Virus record (IMG/VR): IMGVR_UViG_3300034358_000008
Span: 124,001-188,000 of that record
DNA length: 64,000 nucleotides
Direction: 5' to 3' (one strand)
A model generated the notes under the pieces. That model made no database searches and had not been told where the DNA came from. It was given only the letters and a program-made list of their open reading frames with translations. This document shows, piece after piece, positions 20,560 to 52,373 of this stretch. How positions within the stretch are numbered: position 1 is the first letter of the stretch; each line of letters begins with the position of its first letter. The translations under genes were made by a program, and so were the position numbers.

Positions 20560-21258
20560 TTATACACGGTCTGCAATGTTCGTACTAGGATAAGCTCGAC
20601 CATTACCCCACATAATGCGGATACATCCATCGCCACCTTTACCTGATAGGCGGTTACCACTGGAACGTAGTTGGGCACCACCACCACCACCGTAGTTAGC
20701 ACCAACGATCGTGCTACTTGTAACACGTACGCCTAATGGAGAACACCCTCCGCCTAGGATACCACTACCGGAGCCACCGAATGTACCTGAGTCGCCACCT
20801 TTCACATCCCCGGACGAACCGCCACCTGAAGCACCGTTAGCACTGTTACTACCGCCTACGACACTATCAATAGTTGTAGACTCTGCGGCCTGCACACCAG
20901 CAATGACGCCAAACGCACTTGAGGCATAATCGGTTTGGTATGTACCAGCTGTACCCATTGGTAGAGATTGTGCAACACCACCACTCCCTATCACTAATGT
21001 ATATTTATCACCTGGAGTTACCGGAATATCATTCTTCCAACGTACACATCCGCCCCTACCGGCATCTGCCGCCGCAGCGGATTGAACTCGACCCCGCAAA
21101 CCAGCTGAGATAACGGCTACACTAATAGAGGTAACACCGACGGGAACAGTCCATTCGATTGTACCGGGAGTACTGAGTACATCTTGGCCACCTTTAACCA
21201 TTGGATCTGGTGGACCACTACTGGTGAAGCCAGCCCATGCTAGATACTGTTCAATCAT
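20560..21258 (-). CDS. Glycine-rich virion/tail appendage protein
   Basis: WTVPVGVTSISVAVI...VTPGDKYTLVIGSGG...YGGGGG...GGDGCIRIMW is a typical phage Gly-rich domain. Confidence 0.7.
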   Translation of the reverse strand: MIEQYLAWAGFTSSGPPDPMVKGGQDVLSTPGTIEWTVPVGVTSISVAVISAGLRGRVQSAAAADAGRGGCVRWKNDIPVTPGDKYTLVIGSGGVAQSLPMGTAGTYQTDYASSAFGVIAGVQAAESTTIDSVVGGSNSANGASGGGSSGDVKGGDSGTFGGSGSGILGGGCSPLGVRVTSSTIVGANYGGGGGAQLRSSGNRLSGKGGDGCIRIMWGNGRAYPSTNIADRV

Positions 21259-21924
21259 TTAAACCTCCTCAATAATCGGTCGCCATCCAGCGTAGTTAGC
21301 TGTAGTGTTATTGGGCACATACCAACCAGCAGTCAGCTGGTGCGCTTTATCTTGGTCGTTATAGCACCGTACCATGTGATGTGTTGCAGGTGTGTAGCTA
21401 TCCTGAACCCAAGACATTGTACCATTGCCATTCGATACAGCTGTATAGGTAGTCTCAAGCCCTAGGTCGACATCGAGATAAGCGGCTAATCTAGGATACG
21501 CCATGACGTAAGGGTGGTCTTTAGACACGCCATTATAGATCGGATAAACCAGATCGTTAAAGGAACCACCAGTAGAGATCGTGTACTGCGATGTGACAGG
21601 TGGGATATAACCTGTAGGAAGCCTCACCGTGTGAGCTTTACCATTGATCATGAACTGTTGATTACCGAAAACCAAACCTAGCGCATTCAATGCTTCCCAT
21701 GTCATCCCATGACGGAGAACTTTCTTAGCCAGGTAAACGGTCTTACCCAAATATGTATACTTAAGCCAGTTTACCGAAGCGTTGGTAACTGTACCTGTAG
21801 ACCCCATACCTACCAGAGTCGTAAGTGCTGCGGCTGTAATGAAATCTGCCCCAGCTACTTCTCCTAGGAAAACCGTACCTGGCTTCTTAGGCGGCAGGCT
21901 CAGCATGAATTCTAACATAGTCAA
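21259..21924 (-). CDS. Virion structural protein of a phiKZ-like paralog family
   Basis: FLGEV...DFIT...WLKY...K.LR...W...GWRPIIE pattern recalled from phiKZ-like virion paralogs. Confidence 0.6.
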   Translation of the reverse strand: MTMLEFMLSLPPKKPGTVFLGEVAGADFITAAALTTLVGMGSTGTVTNASVNWLKYTYLGKTVYLAKKVLRHGMTWEALNALGLVFGNQQFMINGKAHTVRLPTGYIPPVTSQYTISTGGSFNDLVYPIYNGVSKDHPYVMAYPRLAAYLDVDLGLETTYTAVSNGNGTMSWVQDSYTPATHHMVRCYNDQDKAHQLTAGWYVPNNTTANYAGWRPIIEEV

Positions 21925-21986: not shown

Positions 21987-22511
21987 TTATGCCTTAACGA
22001 TTGTAAAGCGTGCATCGTAGGGAGGTAATACAATGACCTCTTTCTCCGATTTAGCTTCTTTACGTCTTGCAGTTGCAATCAACAGGTTGAGTTCGTCTGT
22101 AATCCAAATGTAAGCGTCTGGTGTGTTGTGTAGCTGCACTACAGTTGATCCATAAGCCTCAGCCATGGATTGATCAGTTGTGAAGCTTAGAGGGCGTTCC
22201 AGAGCGTATTCATAAGACTCACCGATGTGGTGTGGTTTTACTTTAGCTCCCAACCAATCGCGTTTCATCAGCCCCATCGTGTCTTGGTAAGCAGACGTAG
22301 GATAGAATCCACGGAATAGATTAGTTCCCTCAGGTAGTGGCTTAATAGCTTTAAGCTGTTCAGCGATGTCCTTCAACTCAGTGTACATATGCATGTCCGG
22401 TAGTTCAACCCATCGGACCAGTAACTTGATTGCATCAGGCATAGCCATGTAAGCGACTGTTACCTTATCATCCAGTTTCTTTACATCGAACGTCTTTGCT
22501 TCTTCGTTCAT
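21987..22511 (-). CDS. ADP-ribosyltransferase, R-S-E (ARTC) clade
   Basis: LFRG, SFTT...AEAYG and EKEVIVLP in the expected order; 4-nt ATGA overlap with the upstream NADAR-like ORF. Confidence 0.75.
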   Translation of the reverse strand: MNEEAKTFDVKKLDDKVTVAYMAMPDAIKLLVRWVELPDMHMYTELKDIAEQLKAIKPLPEGTNLFRGFYPTSAYQDTMGLMKRDWLGAKVKPHHIGESYEYALERPLSFTTDQSMAEAYGSTVVQLHNTPDAYIWITDELNLLIATARRKEAKSEKEVIVLPPYDARFTIVKA

Positions 22512-22882
22512 TGGTAACTCTCATTCAACAATTCACATAAAGCTCGTGCTTGGGAGATATCGGTATTAGCGAAACAATCGCTTAACCACAGATCATTAGC
22601 TTGAGCGCCTACAGCTAGTTCTCGCATGAGTTCAGGGTTTGCCTTAGCCCATACTCGCCAAAGATCTTTATAAGCTTCCCAGAGGTCTATGGACGTATCT
22701 AAAGGAGGTTTACCTTTGCCGTCACGCCAGTTACTACCACCTGGATTGTAACCTTTAACATCGCACTGATAATGACACTCAATAGTCCGCCCATCCGGCA
22801 TATAAGCAAAGAGTGCACTGTAACGTTTATCGCCAACGGAGGAACATTCGTATCCTCCGCGACGCTTCCACCGGTATGTTAC
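22508..22882 (-). CDS. NADAR-like protein (putative ADP-ribosylhydrolase); no canonical start codon for the full-length frame
   Basis: Frame extends 27 codons upstream of the 22801 ATG (VTYRWKRRGGYECSSVGDKRYSALFAY-MPDGRTIECHYQCDVK); E-x-SS...SA...[TS][IV]E-xx-[YF]Q...K resembles DarT1-associated NADAR. Confidence 0.6.
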   Translation of the reverse strand, partial: VTYRWKRRGGYECSSVGDKRYSALFAYMPDGRTIECHYQCDVKGYNPGGSNWRDGKGKPPLDTSIDLWEAYKDLWRVWAKANPELMRELAVGAQANDLWLSDCFANTDISQARALCELLNESYQ

Positions 22883-24984
22883 TTTGGGACTTCAGTTTCT
22901 TTGCTGGCCAGATAGGCTGCGAGGATTACATCCAAGCGTGGTGCCTTGAGGATCTTCTGACCAATCTCCAACACGTTAACTCTGCAACCCGTAAGGTTAA
23001 CACCCAGCTCACGTTTATGGTAATCACTAATGCCTTGGATGGCAGCAGTTTCCATAACCGTTGTTTCACGAGCAATGTTCAGAATCTGACTAACGTTAGG
23101 ATAAGTCGATACAATGTCCAAGTCAGCTACGTGTGTCCAGATCAAGCTCCGATAGTCGGGGAAGTCTTTAACACACTTAACGCCATTAGGACCCGCCATA
23201 TAGGAAGGCAGTGTAACGATCCATCCATCGTGACCTACCACGTATTGATCTAAGTCATGAACCATCTGGTCAGAACTAGATCCAATTACGCATGGTTCTG
23301 GTCGAGCCAAATACCAGAAGTGCATATCGTCAACGAGGCGCTTAGGGTTCGAGTTAAAGTTCTTAAAGTCCGAAGACTTAGAGAACAATGTAATCGATGC
23401 ACCCAAGTCACTGATCTTCTCATCAAGTTGTTCCAGTCGGATACTGTCGATGATGTTGTAGATGCCGTAACGAACCTTGTGGTTCTTCTGCATCTCGATG
23501 TGCCATTCGATCCCGAAGAGATGGTCAGTTTCTGCAAACTTCAACTTACCAAAGTTCAGCTTAAAGCTAACCTTGTAACCAGCGAATACGTTTACACCCC
23601 ACTCGAGTTTATCAACCGATTTCCATACAGGCTCACGGTGTTCTACTTGGTAGGAGTGCTCTTCGAATTCGTAGATAGCCGATACGGTATCATCATCATC
23701 GAAGTCTGGTACGGAATCATCATCCGCGTCTTCGTCCAGTTCTTCCTCATCTTCGTCTTCAACCGCAATAGTCTCGGTTACGGTTTCAGTGGTAACGACG
23801 TCTTCGGATGGATTAGATACACTCCAGTAAGGGTGACTACCCGAACGGTCAGCCATAGACTTGTCGGCATTCTTTAGGAATGCTTTCAGATCGTCTTCTG
23901 TCTTGATCTCAGATTCTTCATCAACGCTCAGTTCTTTACGAAGGATTGCATCCAATGCATAACTGGATTCTTTACCTTTAGCCAGACGAGTTACACGATA
24001 CGTCGACATCGAGTCAATGCACTGGAAGCTAGCTGGAGCTGTAATCCAATGCCATTGGTCTTCTGGACCTTTAGACTTAGTCACACCAGAAGCGGTAGTG
24101 TTCATCGCTTGGTCTTGACGATAGTGGAAGTAACGGAACTGCTTAGGTACAGAAGGATCACTGAATACTTCAGCTGGATCAATCCCATAACGCTCCAACG
24201 TAGCCAAGATTTTGGACATGTCGAAGTCGATGTTCCAGAAAGCAAAGAAGTCAGGCTTCCACTCATGCAAACGTTTCATGCACTGAATAACGATATCGGC
24301 AGGAGACTCAACTACTTCGATTTGGATATTCAGGTTACGTGCTTTACGTAAAGTCACCAACTCAGGAATACGTTCGAGTTCATCAAACGTCTCTTGTACT
24401 GGATCTTTCAGGTCTTCTACCCAATGCTTGAGATAAGCAAGGTAAACATTAGACTTGTGTGTAACAGACATACAGATGATCTGACCATCGTTCTCAGATT
24501 CATAAACGTTGGTTTCAATGTCACCGCCTGCTACGGTGTTACGAGAGATCAATCCCGGATAGGTCGTACGGTAGTCGTTCTTCAAGCAACATACAGAACT
24601 AACGTCAGAGCCATAAAGAAATGGACTGCGACTAAGCTGTCGCATTCTAGGATTAGGTCCCATGCTGTAATCTTTCAATGCTTTCGCTACAGCGTATGGC
24701 ATCTTAGACTGAGTCGTCTTGAACTTACGTAACTGACTCAGTGGCATGTAGTCTTTCTTTTCTTTGTACGGTCTTAACCGTTCTTCTTTGTATACGGCTG
24801 GATCGATATAAAAAGAACGTTCGTAGTTAGGAATCATTTTGATTCGACTAATCCTACGCTTATCCTTAAGGTGAACTACTTCCTTAACGACGTGCATGTC
24901 GTTACGACCACCTTTCTCGTTTACAAAGGTAATGTGTTTGGCTTCAATGCCTACCACATCTTCCTTACTGAATTCTTCGCTCAT
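22879..24984 (-). CDS. Split family-B DNA polymerase, 3'-5' exonuclease plus motif A part (phiKZ gp82-like)
   Basis: ExoI DIET, ExoII FWNIDFD, ExoIII YNIIDS, polymerase motif A DIVSTYPN; motifs B and C absent. Confidence 0.85.
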   Translation of the reverse strand: MSEEFSKEDVVGIEAKHITFVNEKGGRNDMHVVKEVVHLKDKRRISRIKMIPNYERSFYIDPAVYKEERLRPYKEKKDYMPLSQLRKFKTTQSKMPYAVAKALKDYSMGPNPRMRQLSRSPFLYGSDVSSVCCLKNDYRTTYPGLISRNTVAGGDIETNVYESENDGQIICMSVTHKSNVYLAYLKHWVEDLKDPVQETFDELERIPELVTLRKARNLNIQIEVVESPADIVIQCMKRLHEWKPDFFAFWNIDFDMSKILATLERYGIDPAEVFSDPSVPKQFRYFHYRQDQAMNTTASGVTKSKGPEDQWHWITAPASFQCIDSMSTYRVTRLAKGKESSYALDAILRKELSVDEESEIKTEDDLKAFLKNADKSMADRSGSHPYWSVSNPSEDVVTTETVTETIAVEDEDEEELDEDADDDSVPDFDDDDTVSAIYEFEEHSYQVEHREPVWKSVDKLEWGVNVFAGYKVSFKLNFGKLKFAETDHLFGIEWHIEMQKNHKVRYGIYNIIDSIRLEQLDEKISDLGASITLFSKSSDFKNFNSNPKRLVDDMHFWYLARPEPCVIGSSSDQMVHDLDQYVVGHDGWIVTLPSYMAGPNGVKCVKDFPDYRSLIWTHVADLDIVSTYPNVSQILNIARETTVMETAAIQGISDYHKRELGVNLTGCRVNVLEIGQKILKAPRLDVILAAYLASKETEVPK

Positions 24985-51122: not shown

Positions 51123-51878
51123 ATGAGTGAATATCAAACGACTCGTCCCAATGGTAGCCAATTCGTTGCATACGTGCTAACGCATACACAAAGTGGCAAA
51201 GTGTACGTCGGTAGCACATCAAACCTTCAGAGACGGATCTGGGAGCATCAGGGTAAATTAAAACGTGGTACTCACCATAATAGCGAGCTTCAGAAACTTT
51301 ACGATGCTAGTAATGAGATAGAATTTAATTCTTTCCCAGCACTGGATAACGTAACAGTCCTGGAACTGGAAAGAGATATTATCTCAGAATACGCCGTTAT
51401 GGGTAATGTGCTTAACGTTATTAGTGATCCTGTTAATCCATCAGTTACTAATCCTCCTTTGATTCAGTATCGCGATTCTATAGCTAAACGTGTCAGCATC
51501 GACGGTATTGAATATACGAGTATAAAACAGGCTGCGAAGACACTGAGTTACAGTAAACAGAAAATACAATATTGGTTAAAGAGTGTGAGCACTGCCCACG
51601 AGAATGTTTTCTACGTGGGATCGCCAAAAGAAATCTCTGTTACTGGACGGGTAAACCTATCTGAATTGGCTCGAGCCAATGGGTTATCTGTATCGACTGT
51701 TACAGCACGGAAAAGAACGGGTGTATCGGCAGATGAGTTATTTCTACCGGTCGTCGATTCAACCGTGAAAAAGCTTTCTGACTATCTTGGTTTGAACTAT
51801 TCAAAAATTTGGTATCAACTAAATACAAAGGGACTGTCACCCAATGAAATAATACAGAAGTATTTAAGTGAGTCAAAT
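51123..51878 (+). mobile_element. Homing-endonuclease insertion (GIY-YIG, NUMOD1/HTH)
   Basis: Motifs above; appears more AT-rich than the core genes by eye. Confidence 0.6.
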
Positions 51879-52373
51879 ATGACCAAAGAAAATGTCCAAT
51901 TCGTAATAGGTACCGATATCTTCAAACAGGATGGCGACCTTTACATAATCACGGTTAACTGTGTTGGTGTAATGGGGGCCGGATTAGCCAAATCTTTCAA
52001 AGAAGCCCATCCCGACCTATATGAACGCTATCGTCATGATTGTCGGATGAAGATTATTACAATCGGTAATCCTGTAATCTACACAGCTGATAACGGCAAG
52101 CACTACATGATGTTCCCTACTAAGGATCGCTGGCAAGATCCATCACTACCTGAATACATTTCCTCTGGCTTACAGTGGATGGTGGACTCGGTTGGTGAAG
52201 AAGGTGATATCGACCCGGCGTGGAAAATAGTAATCCCTCCTTTAGGGTGCGCTAACGGCGGGCTTAGTTTCGCAGACGTAAAAGAAAACATAAAACTCTT
52301 TGCTGGGCACATGCCTAATGAAGTTGTAGTGGTCTATCCTCCGTGGATGGAAACCACGAATGCATGGGATTAA
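51123..52373 (+). CDS. GIY-YIG homing endonuclease fused in frame to a DarG-like macrodomain
   Basis: VAY...KVYVGST...RR..EH...H.N..LQ and NUMOD1-like IDGIEYTSIKQAA; from Met253 (51879) TVNCVGVMGAGLA...FPTKDRW...PPLGCANGGL. Confidence 0.85.
   Translation: MSEYQTTRPNGSQFVAYVLTHTQSGKVYVGSTSNLQRRIWEHQGKLKRGTHHNSELQKLYDASNEIEFNSFPALDNVTVLELERDIISEYAVMGNVLNVISDPVNPSVTNPPLIQYRDSIAKRVSIDGIEYTSIKQAAKTLSYSKQKIQYWLKSVSTAHENVFYVGSPKEISVTGRVNLSELARANGLSVSTVTARKRTGVSADELFLPVVDSTVKKLSDYLGLNYSKIWYQLNTKGLSPNEIIQKYLSESNMTKENVQFVIGTDIFKQDGDLYIITVNCVGVMGAGLAKSFKEAHPDLYERYRHDCRMKIITIGNPVIYTADNGKHYMMFPTKDRWQDPSLPEYISSGLQWMVDSVGEEGDIDPAWKIVIPPLGCANGGLSFADVKENIKLFAGHMPNEVVVVYPPWMETTNAWD

Follow-up and report, generated by a model that had tools for sequence, protein, structure and literature searches.

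Replication of phage DNA is blocked by DarT toxins, which ADP-ribosylate it in single-stranded form. The guanine ADP-ribosylation made by DarT1 is reversed by NADARs of phages, for example AdfN (PMC11257639), and chimalliviruses need a nuclear macrodomain, AdfM, against DarTG2 (PMC13309987). The structure of the chimallivirus replisome is being actively studied; the phiKZ polymerase is currently described as gp82 together with gp50 and Rhc, and neither an extended gp82 nor a frameshift is mentioned in the October 2026 cryo-electron microscopy study of this enzyme (bioRxiv 10.64898/2026.09.30.755723). Among bacterial recoding signals, C_CCA_AAG, G_GGA_AAG and A_AAA_AAG are highly shift-prone heptamers of the X_XXA_AAG class in E. 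coli (PMC5009743). The locus considered here lies in a window of 64,000 nucleotides (nt), the whole stretch of DNA that was analysed, which corresponds to positions 124,001 to 188,000 of the IMG/VR virus record IMGVR_UViG_3300034358_000008. The record is 324,912 bp in full, and the sequence has about 77% nucleotide identity to Pseudomonas phage 201phi2-1 and is also related to other phiKZ-like nucleus-forming phages. On the minus strand of the window, the gene for the N-terminal subunit of a split B-family DNA polymerase is followed by a NADAR-like frame and then by a candidate ADP-ribosyltransferase (ART) gene, a layout of three successive minus-strand frames that agrees with an earlier first-pass annotation made from the sequence alone. 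A comparison of this junction with its counterparts in related phages suggests that the NADAR-like domain is likely to be joined to the polymerase by a conserved -1 frameshift.

The polymerase gene (24984..22879, minus strand) encodes a subunit of 701 amino acids (aa) and ends with a TAA stop at 22881-22879. The product is a homologue of phiKZ gp82 and is called DNAP-N, a subunit name taken from the recent polymerase study (bioRxiv 10.64898/2026.09.30.755723); it matches the DNA polymerase family phrog_3011 (E 5e-226) and is 53-79% identical to phiKZ gp82 and 201phi2-1 gp144. The 3' end of the gene reads GTC-CCA-AAG-TAA, in which the last two sense codons and the preceding base form the slippery heptamer C_CCA_AAG (22888..22882, minus strand), the proposed -1 frameshift site, with the 0-frame TAA immediately behind it. 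The NADAR-like frame (22882..22508, minus strand; 124 codons plus the stop TGA) coincides exactly with the polymerase -1 frame, a frame that is open from 10 nt upstream of the polymerase stop. The same relation was found at other junctions of this kind: in all 18 distinct polymerase-NADAR junctions, including those of the window, seven metagenomic relatives, phiKZ, PA7, HPP-Temi, PS119XW, PhiPA3, Phabio, 201phi2-1, Viktualia and others, the -1 register encodes the NADAR-like domain and has no stop from the heptamer onwards; in 201phi2-1 and Viktualia, a short open linker lies between heptamer and domain. The heptamer C_CCA_AAG is identical in 17 of the 18 junctions. The exception, L029, has CTG-GGA-AAG and hence G_GGA_AAG, a coordinated switch by which the slippery pattern is kept and the amino acids are altered. 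Eight different codons precede CCA (GTC, TCC, CTC, AGC, ACC, AAC, GCC and CCC, encoding V, S, L, T, N, A or P), all of which end in C, and the polymerase tail ahead of the heptamer is poorly conserved, even as protein. In addition, the three wobble-type sites of the heptamer vary in none of the 13 aligned C_CCA_AAG junctions, compared with 21 of 22 neighbouring third positions (P ~0.002), and CCA and AAG are never swapped for synonymous codons. In a more distant relative (L036:2470-2580), A_AAA_AAG is found 102 nt upstream of the polymerase stop and is in register with a -1 NADAR frame that has no start codon and overlaps the polymerase tail by ~70 nt. Judged by these alignments, both the heptamer and the frame relation are conserved beyond what the protein sequence needs.

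The NADAR-like frame also lacks a conventional beginning. The first-pass annotation had placed the start of this open reading frame (ORF) at 22882, but the codon found there is GTA, which is not a start codon, and the first ATG, GTG or TTG of the frame occurs at 22801, the internal ATG of codon 28 (22801..22799, minus strand); CTG, ATT, ATC and ATA are likewise absent from the 27 codons before M28. Because there is no start codon before codon 28, the frame cannot start by ordinary initiation. ORF callers choose the internal ATG, which yields a 97-aa product without the invariant N-terminal motif, and gene calls in this lineage give only 96-97 aa (96 aa in each of five relatives). In phiKZ (L010, NC_004629, record positions 79873-80244), an intact 123-codon NADAR-like frame extends from the gp82 stop with no ATG throughout, and the annotated 38-aa PHIKZ082.1 (gp82.1) is only the C-terminal piece of it. 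The intact frame of Viktualia has been annotated as three small ORFs. The start-less codons 1-27 hold the strongest motif of the family, GGYECSSxGDxRFSA, with the invariant residues G17, D18, R20, S22 and A23. Among 14 start-less relatives, these codons have 10, 14 and 25 variable sites at codon positions 1, 2 and 3, respectively, and the pairwise codon differences comprise 864 synonymous versus 414 non-synonymous changes, a substitution pattern which indicates that codons 1-27 are under coding selection. If the start-less region is translated, ribosomes must therefore arrive by a route other than ordinary initiation. The cutting of the frame by ORF callers to 96-97 aa, and to 38 aa in phiKZ, would also be expected of a pseudogene in decay or of a sequencing or assembly frameshift; however, the arrangement recurs in 18 independently sequenced junctions, internal stops are absent and the substitution patterns are those of strong purifying selection, so this explanation was rejected as barely credible. 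An alternative genetic code was rejected as well, as nothing in the genome calls for one.

The 124-aa translation belongs to a large and strongly conserved family (>1000 homologues of ~125 aa, 60-70% identity) and aligns with profile positions 2-123 of 124 of phrog_9995 (E 4e-51). Its AlphaFold 2 (AF2) model has a predicted local distance difference test (pLDDT) score of 96.2. When this model was compared with 48,161 solved chains in an exhaustive structural search, the top three matches were all three NADAR/YbiA structures, namely 8bat_A, the Geobacter DarG1 NADAR (Z 9.3, with 115 of the 124 residues aligned), 2b3w, E. coli YbiA (Z 7.9), and 8bau, a Phytophthora NADAR with ADP-ribose (Z 7.5), whereas the next match had a Z of only 4.2. 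Weak matches to NADAR and DUF4326 proteins were also obtained in AFDB and BFVD. Foldseek against the PDB returned nothing significant (lowest E 2.7; 8bau ranked tenth), no match came from the language-model atlas, and the sequence search against solved structures produced nothing useful. In NADARs, the catalytic residues are a Glu and a Lys in the first core helix and a charged residue (Glu, Asp or His) of the last strand (PMC11543638, PMC11125620, PMC11257639). In the NADAR-like family, E35 and K43, at the first helix (34-42), are invariant, and D102, at least 90% conserved, directly follows the strand 99-101; placed by secondary structure, these three residues recall, and may correspond to, the NADAR catalytic set. 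Certain observations count against the assignment: Pfam NADAR (PF08719) is absent from the 124-aa translation at E<=1 and from the entire 324,912-bp genome at E<=10, although control genomes were matched; a comparison of the family profile with T4 AdfN was not significant, the single-sequence target making this a weak test; and Glu and Lys are 8 residues apart, one more than the 7 of known NADARs. The NADAR-like label of the first-pass annotation is thus supported by the model at the level of the fold but not by sequence-level membership in the NADAR superfamily. The domain was also seen within a 1317-aa viral protein (BFVD A0A516MBM4) and in a 347-aa fusion with DUF2493 (SLOG) (AFDB A0A258KYN5), which means that natural fusions of NADAR-like domains to other partners exist.

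According to the proposed mechanism, ribosomes positioned on CCA-AAG, with TAA next in frame, would slip back one base on C_CCA_AAG and read on through GTA-ACA-TAC to produce an 825-aa polymerase-NADAR fusion, while most ribosomes would terminate and release the plain 701-aa subunit. In chimalliviruses, the gene for the polymerase N-subunit has the NADAR-like domain as a conserved 3' extension, and this ties the domain to replication more tightly than the first-pass annotation had supposed. With regard to function, we infer a NADAR-type N-glycosidase that strips DNA bases of ADP-ribose; tethered to the replisome and entering the phage nucleus along with the polymerase, the domain would clear DarT-type lesions where replication stalls. 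The frameshift fusion and this function, taken together as one statement, are considered somewhat better than an even prospect; the frameshift by itself is rated a little higher, as likely. The wider proposal, that phiKZ-type phages including phiKZ itself make a longer polymerase N-subunit by a conserved X_XXA_AAG -1 frameshift and that its NADAR-fold domain is a replisome-borne, nucleus-imported DNA de-ADP-ribosylase, is offered as a tentative idea with the balance against it. In the literature on frameshifting in phiKZ and chimalliviruses, gp82 and gp82.1, no report of recoding was found, most subscription-journal papers being outside the coverage.

It is conceivable that no frameshift occurs and that the NADAR-like protein is made alone, either by restart at a non-canonical codon after the polymerase stop or from the internal ATG at codon 28. 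Several heptamer-bearing relatives do have a start codon at the junction (PS119XW with GTGA, PhiPA3 with TAATG and 201phi2-1 with a nearby GTG), and the first two are classic termination-reinitiation overlaps at the same spot; in phiKZ and L007, codon 2 is ATA or ATT. In a second junction group, comprising D6, Psa21 and eight IMG/VR contigs, the coding sequence of the domain occupies the +1 frame, extends over the end of the polymerase gene and in most cases has GTG or TTG, and in most other phages the NADAR-like family is free-standing. The start codons at some junctions and the second group imply that a free-standing NADAR-like protein is viable, and it is possible that this form, made by termination-reinitiation coupling, is ancestral. 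Moreover, an in-frame polymerase-NADAR fusion was found in none of the 120 best polymerase homologues (463-727 aa), a conserved RNA structure 3' of the heptamer was not found (consensus -5.4 kcal/mol, no compensatory pairs, z -1.0), and no obvious Shine-Dalgarno-like element was seen upstream, which leaves the neighbouring 0-frame stop as the sole candidate stimulator. All of these observations weigh against a frameshift. Stimulatory elements are common at -1 frameshift sites but not obligatory. Separate synthesis, however, is difficult to reconcile with the window and eight other lineages, which have no near-cognate start in the 27 codons, and initiation at M28 would remove five invariant residues and would require an ATG that phiKZ does not have. 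Separate synthesis would also leave unexplained the conservation of X_XXA_AAG at the nucleotide level and the G_GGA_AAG and A_AAA_AAG variants. Synthesis without a frameshift therefore appears unlikely, and the frameshift fusion is preferred.

In the second junction group (L012, L013 and L015-L022, junction at ~2470-2530), the NADAR-like gene comes after a conserved GAAAAGAAG, and a GTG, TTG, CTG or ACG is located three codons before a conserved Trp; L015, L018 and L021 have no canonical start near the Trp codon. Weak initiation, or another kind of recoding, for example -2 on GAA_AAG, may operate in this group. In HPP-Temi (L011, locus positions 1-2504), the polymerase N-subunit gene is annotated as two pieces flanking an HNH endonuclease gene, suggesting an intron or a similar insertion in this phage.

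The substrate of the domain might also differ from the one proposed above. As in YbiA, which acts on riboflavin intermediates (PMC11543638), the domain could act as an N-glycosidase on, or simply bind, a nucleotide or a small molecule derived from NAD, in a damage-control function linked to nucleotide supply for replication. Around the NADAR-like genes of other phages, nucleotide-metabolism genes predominate, such as those for dCTP deaminase or dUTPase (4 and 3 of 63), SLOG, NUDIX and HD proteins, and a small-molecule substrate is therefore possible instead of ADP-ribosylated DNA, which tells against the proposed function; the SLOG (DUF2493) fusion and the failure of the Pfam NADAR model to match are consistent with a small-molecule substrate as well. 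On the other side, guanine-ADP-ribose is hydrolysed by every NADAR subtype tested so far (PMC11125620), attachment to a replicative polymerase better suits a DNA substrate, and chimalliviruses are known to need enzymes that take ADP-ribose off DNA (AdfM, PMC13309987). A small-molecule role is thus regarded as possible yet doubtful. A different question is whether the domain acts together with the downstream ART. The first-pass annotation had proposed a co-inherited writer/eraser pair, and such a dedicated module, which might equally be a toxin and its antidote, would have the ART mark DNA or another target and the NADAR-like protein reverse the mark on the phage's own. The ATGA overlap of the NADAR-like stop and the ART start (22511-22508, minus strand), confirmed in the window and also present in L004 and L014, fits this idea; in addition, ART-NADAR toxin-antitoxin pairs such as DarT1-NADAR and YarT-YbiA exist (PMC11125620), and an ART-PolyVal domain accounts for one of the 63 neighbours recorded around the NADAR-like genes of other phages. 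Nevertheless, the two families proved to be disjoint. Across 50,697 phage records searched by tblastn, the NADAR-like gene was found in 84, of which 69 are Pseudomonas phages (those examined being phiKZ-like) that carry no ART at all; the ART was detected in only nine distant jumbo phages, at 22-35% identity, with Vibrio, Shewanella, Serratia, Xanthomonas, Klebsiella and Ralstonia as hosts, and the two lists have no record in common. The NADAR-like gene follows the polymerase at every phiKZ-like junction examined, whether the ART is present or not, the ART is of the R-S-E type and not DarT-like, and in two relatives another gene separates the pair. The pairing thus fails the co-inheritance check that the first-pass annotation had itself put forward. 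A dedicated writer/eraser or toxin/antidote module is accordingly considered quite improbable.

The arrangement downstream of the NADAR-like frame varies among relatives. Among 100 fetched loci, adjacency of the ART and the NADAR-like gene was confined to L004 (90% identical) and L014 (86%). In L097, whose ART is 75% identical, the two are separated by a 137-aa gene, and it is this gene that the ART overlaps instead; in L005 (64% identical), a 134-aa gene and an opposite-strand ORF intervene. The intervening 134-137-aa gene belongs to the 201phi2-1 gp141 family, which has no Pfam match and usually follows the NADAR-like gene (L097:3591-4004, L005:4293-4697, L009:1588-1995 and L001:1855-2262). 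It is absent from the genome of the window, and the ATGA overlap was seen only where it is missing, namely in the window, L004 and L014. The ART thus abuts the NADAR-like frame here because the gp141-like gene is missing, and since this gene stands between the two in relatives and was lost here, the ATGA coupling is derived, a by-product of loss in a variable slot. Translational coupling of the ART to the NADAR-like frame would have arisen only after loss of the intervening gene. Complex prediction for the two proteins gave 'no answer' (score 0.02), which is evidence neither way. On the basis of gene distribution, the ART is best described as a lineage-specific add-on and not as the evolutionary partner of the NADAR-like gene, to which adjacency alone links it.

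The ART candidate itself (22511..21987, minus strand, 174 aa) is present as a single copy in the genome. It has no Pfam match, and therefore no match to any Pfam ART model; in PHROG it has only a weak match to the unnamed phrog_29772. Nine close homologues were found, and a profile search of 1.8 billion proteins yielded 152 representatives. The R-S-E motifs reported in the first-pass annotation, LFRG (R67), SFTT (S109) and EKE (E156-x-E158), are indeed present. In an alignment of 96 family members, R67 and G68 are invariant, and W34, S109, A117, G121, E140 and E158 are nearly so; the family consensus LYRGF ... PLSFTTD ... ITDEL ... TQxEVIxLP is an R-S-(Q/E)xE signature, with E or Q two residues before E158. 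Structure prediction, which the first-pass annotation had proposed for both proteins, produced an ART fold in this case (AF2 model, pLDDT 95.5) beside the NADAR/YbiA-like fold described above. R67 falls in the first strand (66-69), S109 in the strand 108-111, which is followed by a helix, and E158 opens a late strand (158-161), a placement that rests on secondary structure and not on superposition. Against the 48,161 solved chains, nearly all of the 40 best VIA-align matches were ADP-ribosyltransferases (Z 5-6.9), led by R-S-E enzymes, including a Listeria ART toxin, Vis, C3, Certhrax, an iota-like toxin, HopU1, VIP2, ExoS and Tre1. Foldseek agreed, with a list headed by C2-I, ExoS and C3, and the best Swiss-Prot model was DraT (E 6e-4). 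The language-model atlas provided leads only (DRAT, Mod_ADP_RT and ADPrib_exo_Tox), the sequence search against solved structures gave nothing useful, and a comparison of the ART family profile with T4 Alt was not significant, which is a weak test with a single-sequence target. The models indicate that the 174-aa protein has an ART fold of the R-S-E type, and it is probably an active R-S-E ADP-ribosyltransferase. The first-pass annotation had also assigned DarT1 to the ARTC clade; DarT is an ARTD-type enzyme (H-Y-E) (PMC11543638), and the ART of the window is not DarT1-like. Some ART relatives form part of very large proteins, together with GNAT, DUF5662, HD, SNF2/ResIII or SUKH domains, a setting that matches the pattern of phage 'polyvalent' proteins. 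In the window, the ART is an accessory gene that occupies the variable slot after the NADAR-like frame, and its target would most likely be a host or competitor protein, as with other R-S-E enzymes.

Just past the ART stop, a terminator-like hairpin (21983-21961, minus strand; 7-bp stem, UUCG loop, then UUUAU) was read by eye; it was not flagged by a consensus terminator scan and is weak evidence only. Immediately beyond it (20560-21924, minus strand), there are a 232-aa Gly_rich_2 protein and a 221-aa ORF, the latter aligning with no more than the central part of virion structural protein families that are far longer (phrog_1062 among others), and the two may form a short tail-fibre-like module in the same variable region. 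Elsewhere in the window (51123-52373, plus strand), a 416-aa ORF has a Pfam Macro domain at ~51951-52286, with a match (E 5.7e-8) that passes the cut-off. This ORF may be a homologue of the chimallivirus anti-DarTG2 protein AdfM and hence a second candidate 'eraser' in the window.

The main value of these observations lies in a probable -1 frameshift, conserved among relatives, by which the DNA polymerase N-subunit of chimalliviruses would gain a NADAR-fold domain; the proposal is readily testable in phiKZ. If it is true, a conserved domain that is shortened or overlooked in current annotations (38 aa in phiKZ, 96-97 aa in other phages) is part of the polymerase, and a new example of recoding in a replication gene is obtained. 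It would also mean that an anti-defence enzyme is physically attached to the machine it protects, with counter-defence built into the polymerase. For the first-pass annotation, this amounts to a correction: the ART, plausibly an active enzyme, is not the evolutionary partner of the NADAR-like gene.

Among known recoding systems, E. coli dnaX (tau/gamma) and other bacterial and phage X_XXA_AAG cassettes resemble the junction in using the same heptamer class, in a replication gene, to obtain two products per message. Neither a 3' hairpin nor a 5' Shine-Dalgarno stimulator was found here, and the predicted shift would add a whole enzyme domain rather than truncate the product. The lambda G/GT shift takes place on G_GGA_AAG, which belongs to the heptamer class seen here, and B. 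subtilis cdd (A_CGA_AAG) likewise has its shift site directly at the 0-frame stop, with -1 shifting at A_AAG (PMC5009743). The ART has the general organization of DraT, C3, Vis, ExoS, Tre1 and T4 Alt, ModA and ModB, with the ART fold, an Arg in strand 1, Ser-x-Thr in strand 2, ahead of a helix, and (Q/E)xE where strand 5 begins; it differs from these R-S-E enzymes in its length of only 174 aa, its three-helix N-terminal cap and the absence of a Pfam ART match. DarT1-NADAR (DarTG1) and YarT-YbiA (PMC11543638, PMC11125620) share with the locus an ART gene adjoining a NADAR-fold gene, whereas the two genes here are not co-inherited, their adjacency is secondary, and the ART is of the R-S-E type in contrast to DarT, an ARTD enzyme. 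The domain itself is similar to AdfN (T4 gp30.3; PMC11257639), which is also a small phage NADAR-fold protein with no cognate toxin and with conserved Glu and Lys in the first helix. Sequence relationship between the two is not detectable, the last-strand residue is D102 here and His in gp30.3-type proteins, the Glu-Lys spacing is 8 instead of 7, and the domain of the window is joined to a polymerase gene, with an enzyme role that is predicted. AdfM (PMC13309987) offers a parallel in biology, as a chimallivirus enzyme proposed to strip ADP-ribose from phage DNA in the phage nucleus; its fold is macro and not NADAR, its base specificity presumably differs, and it is encoded by a separate gene, whereas the NADAR-like domain would be an appendage of the polymerase.

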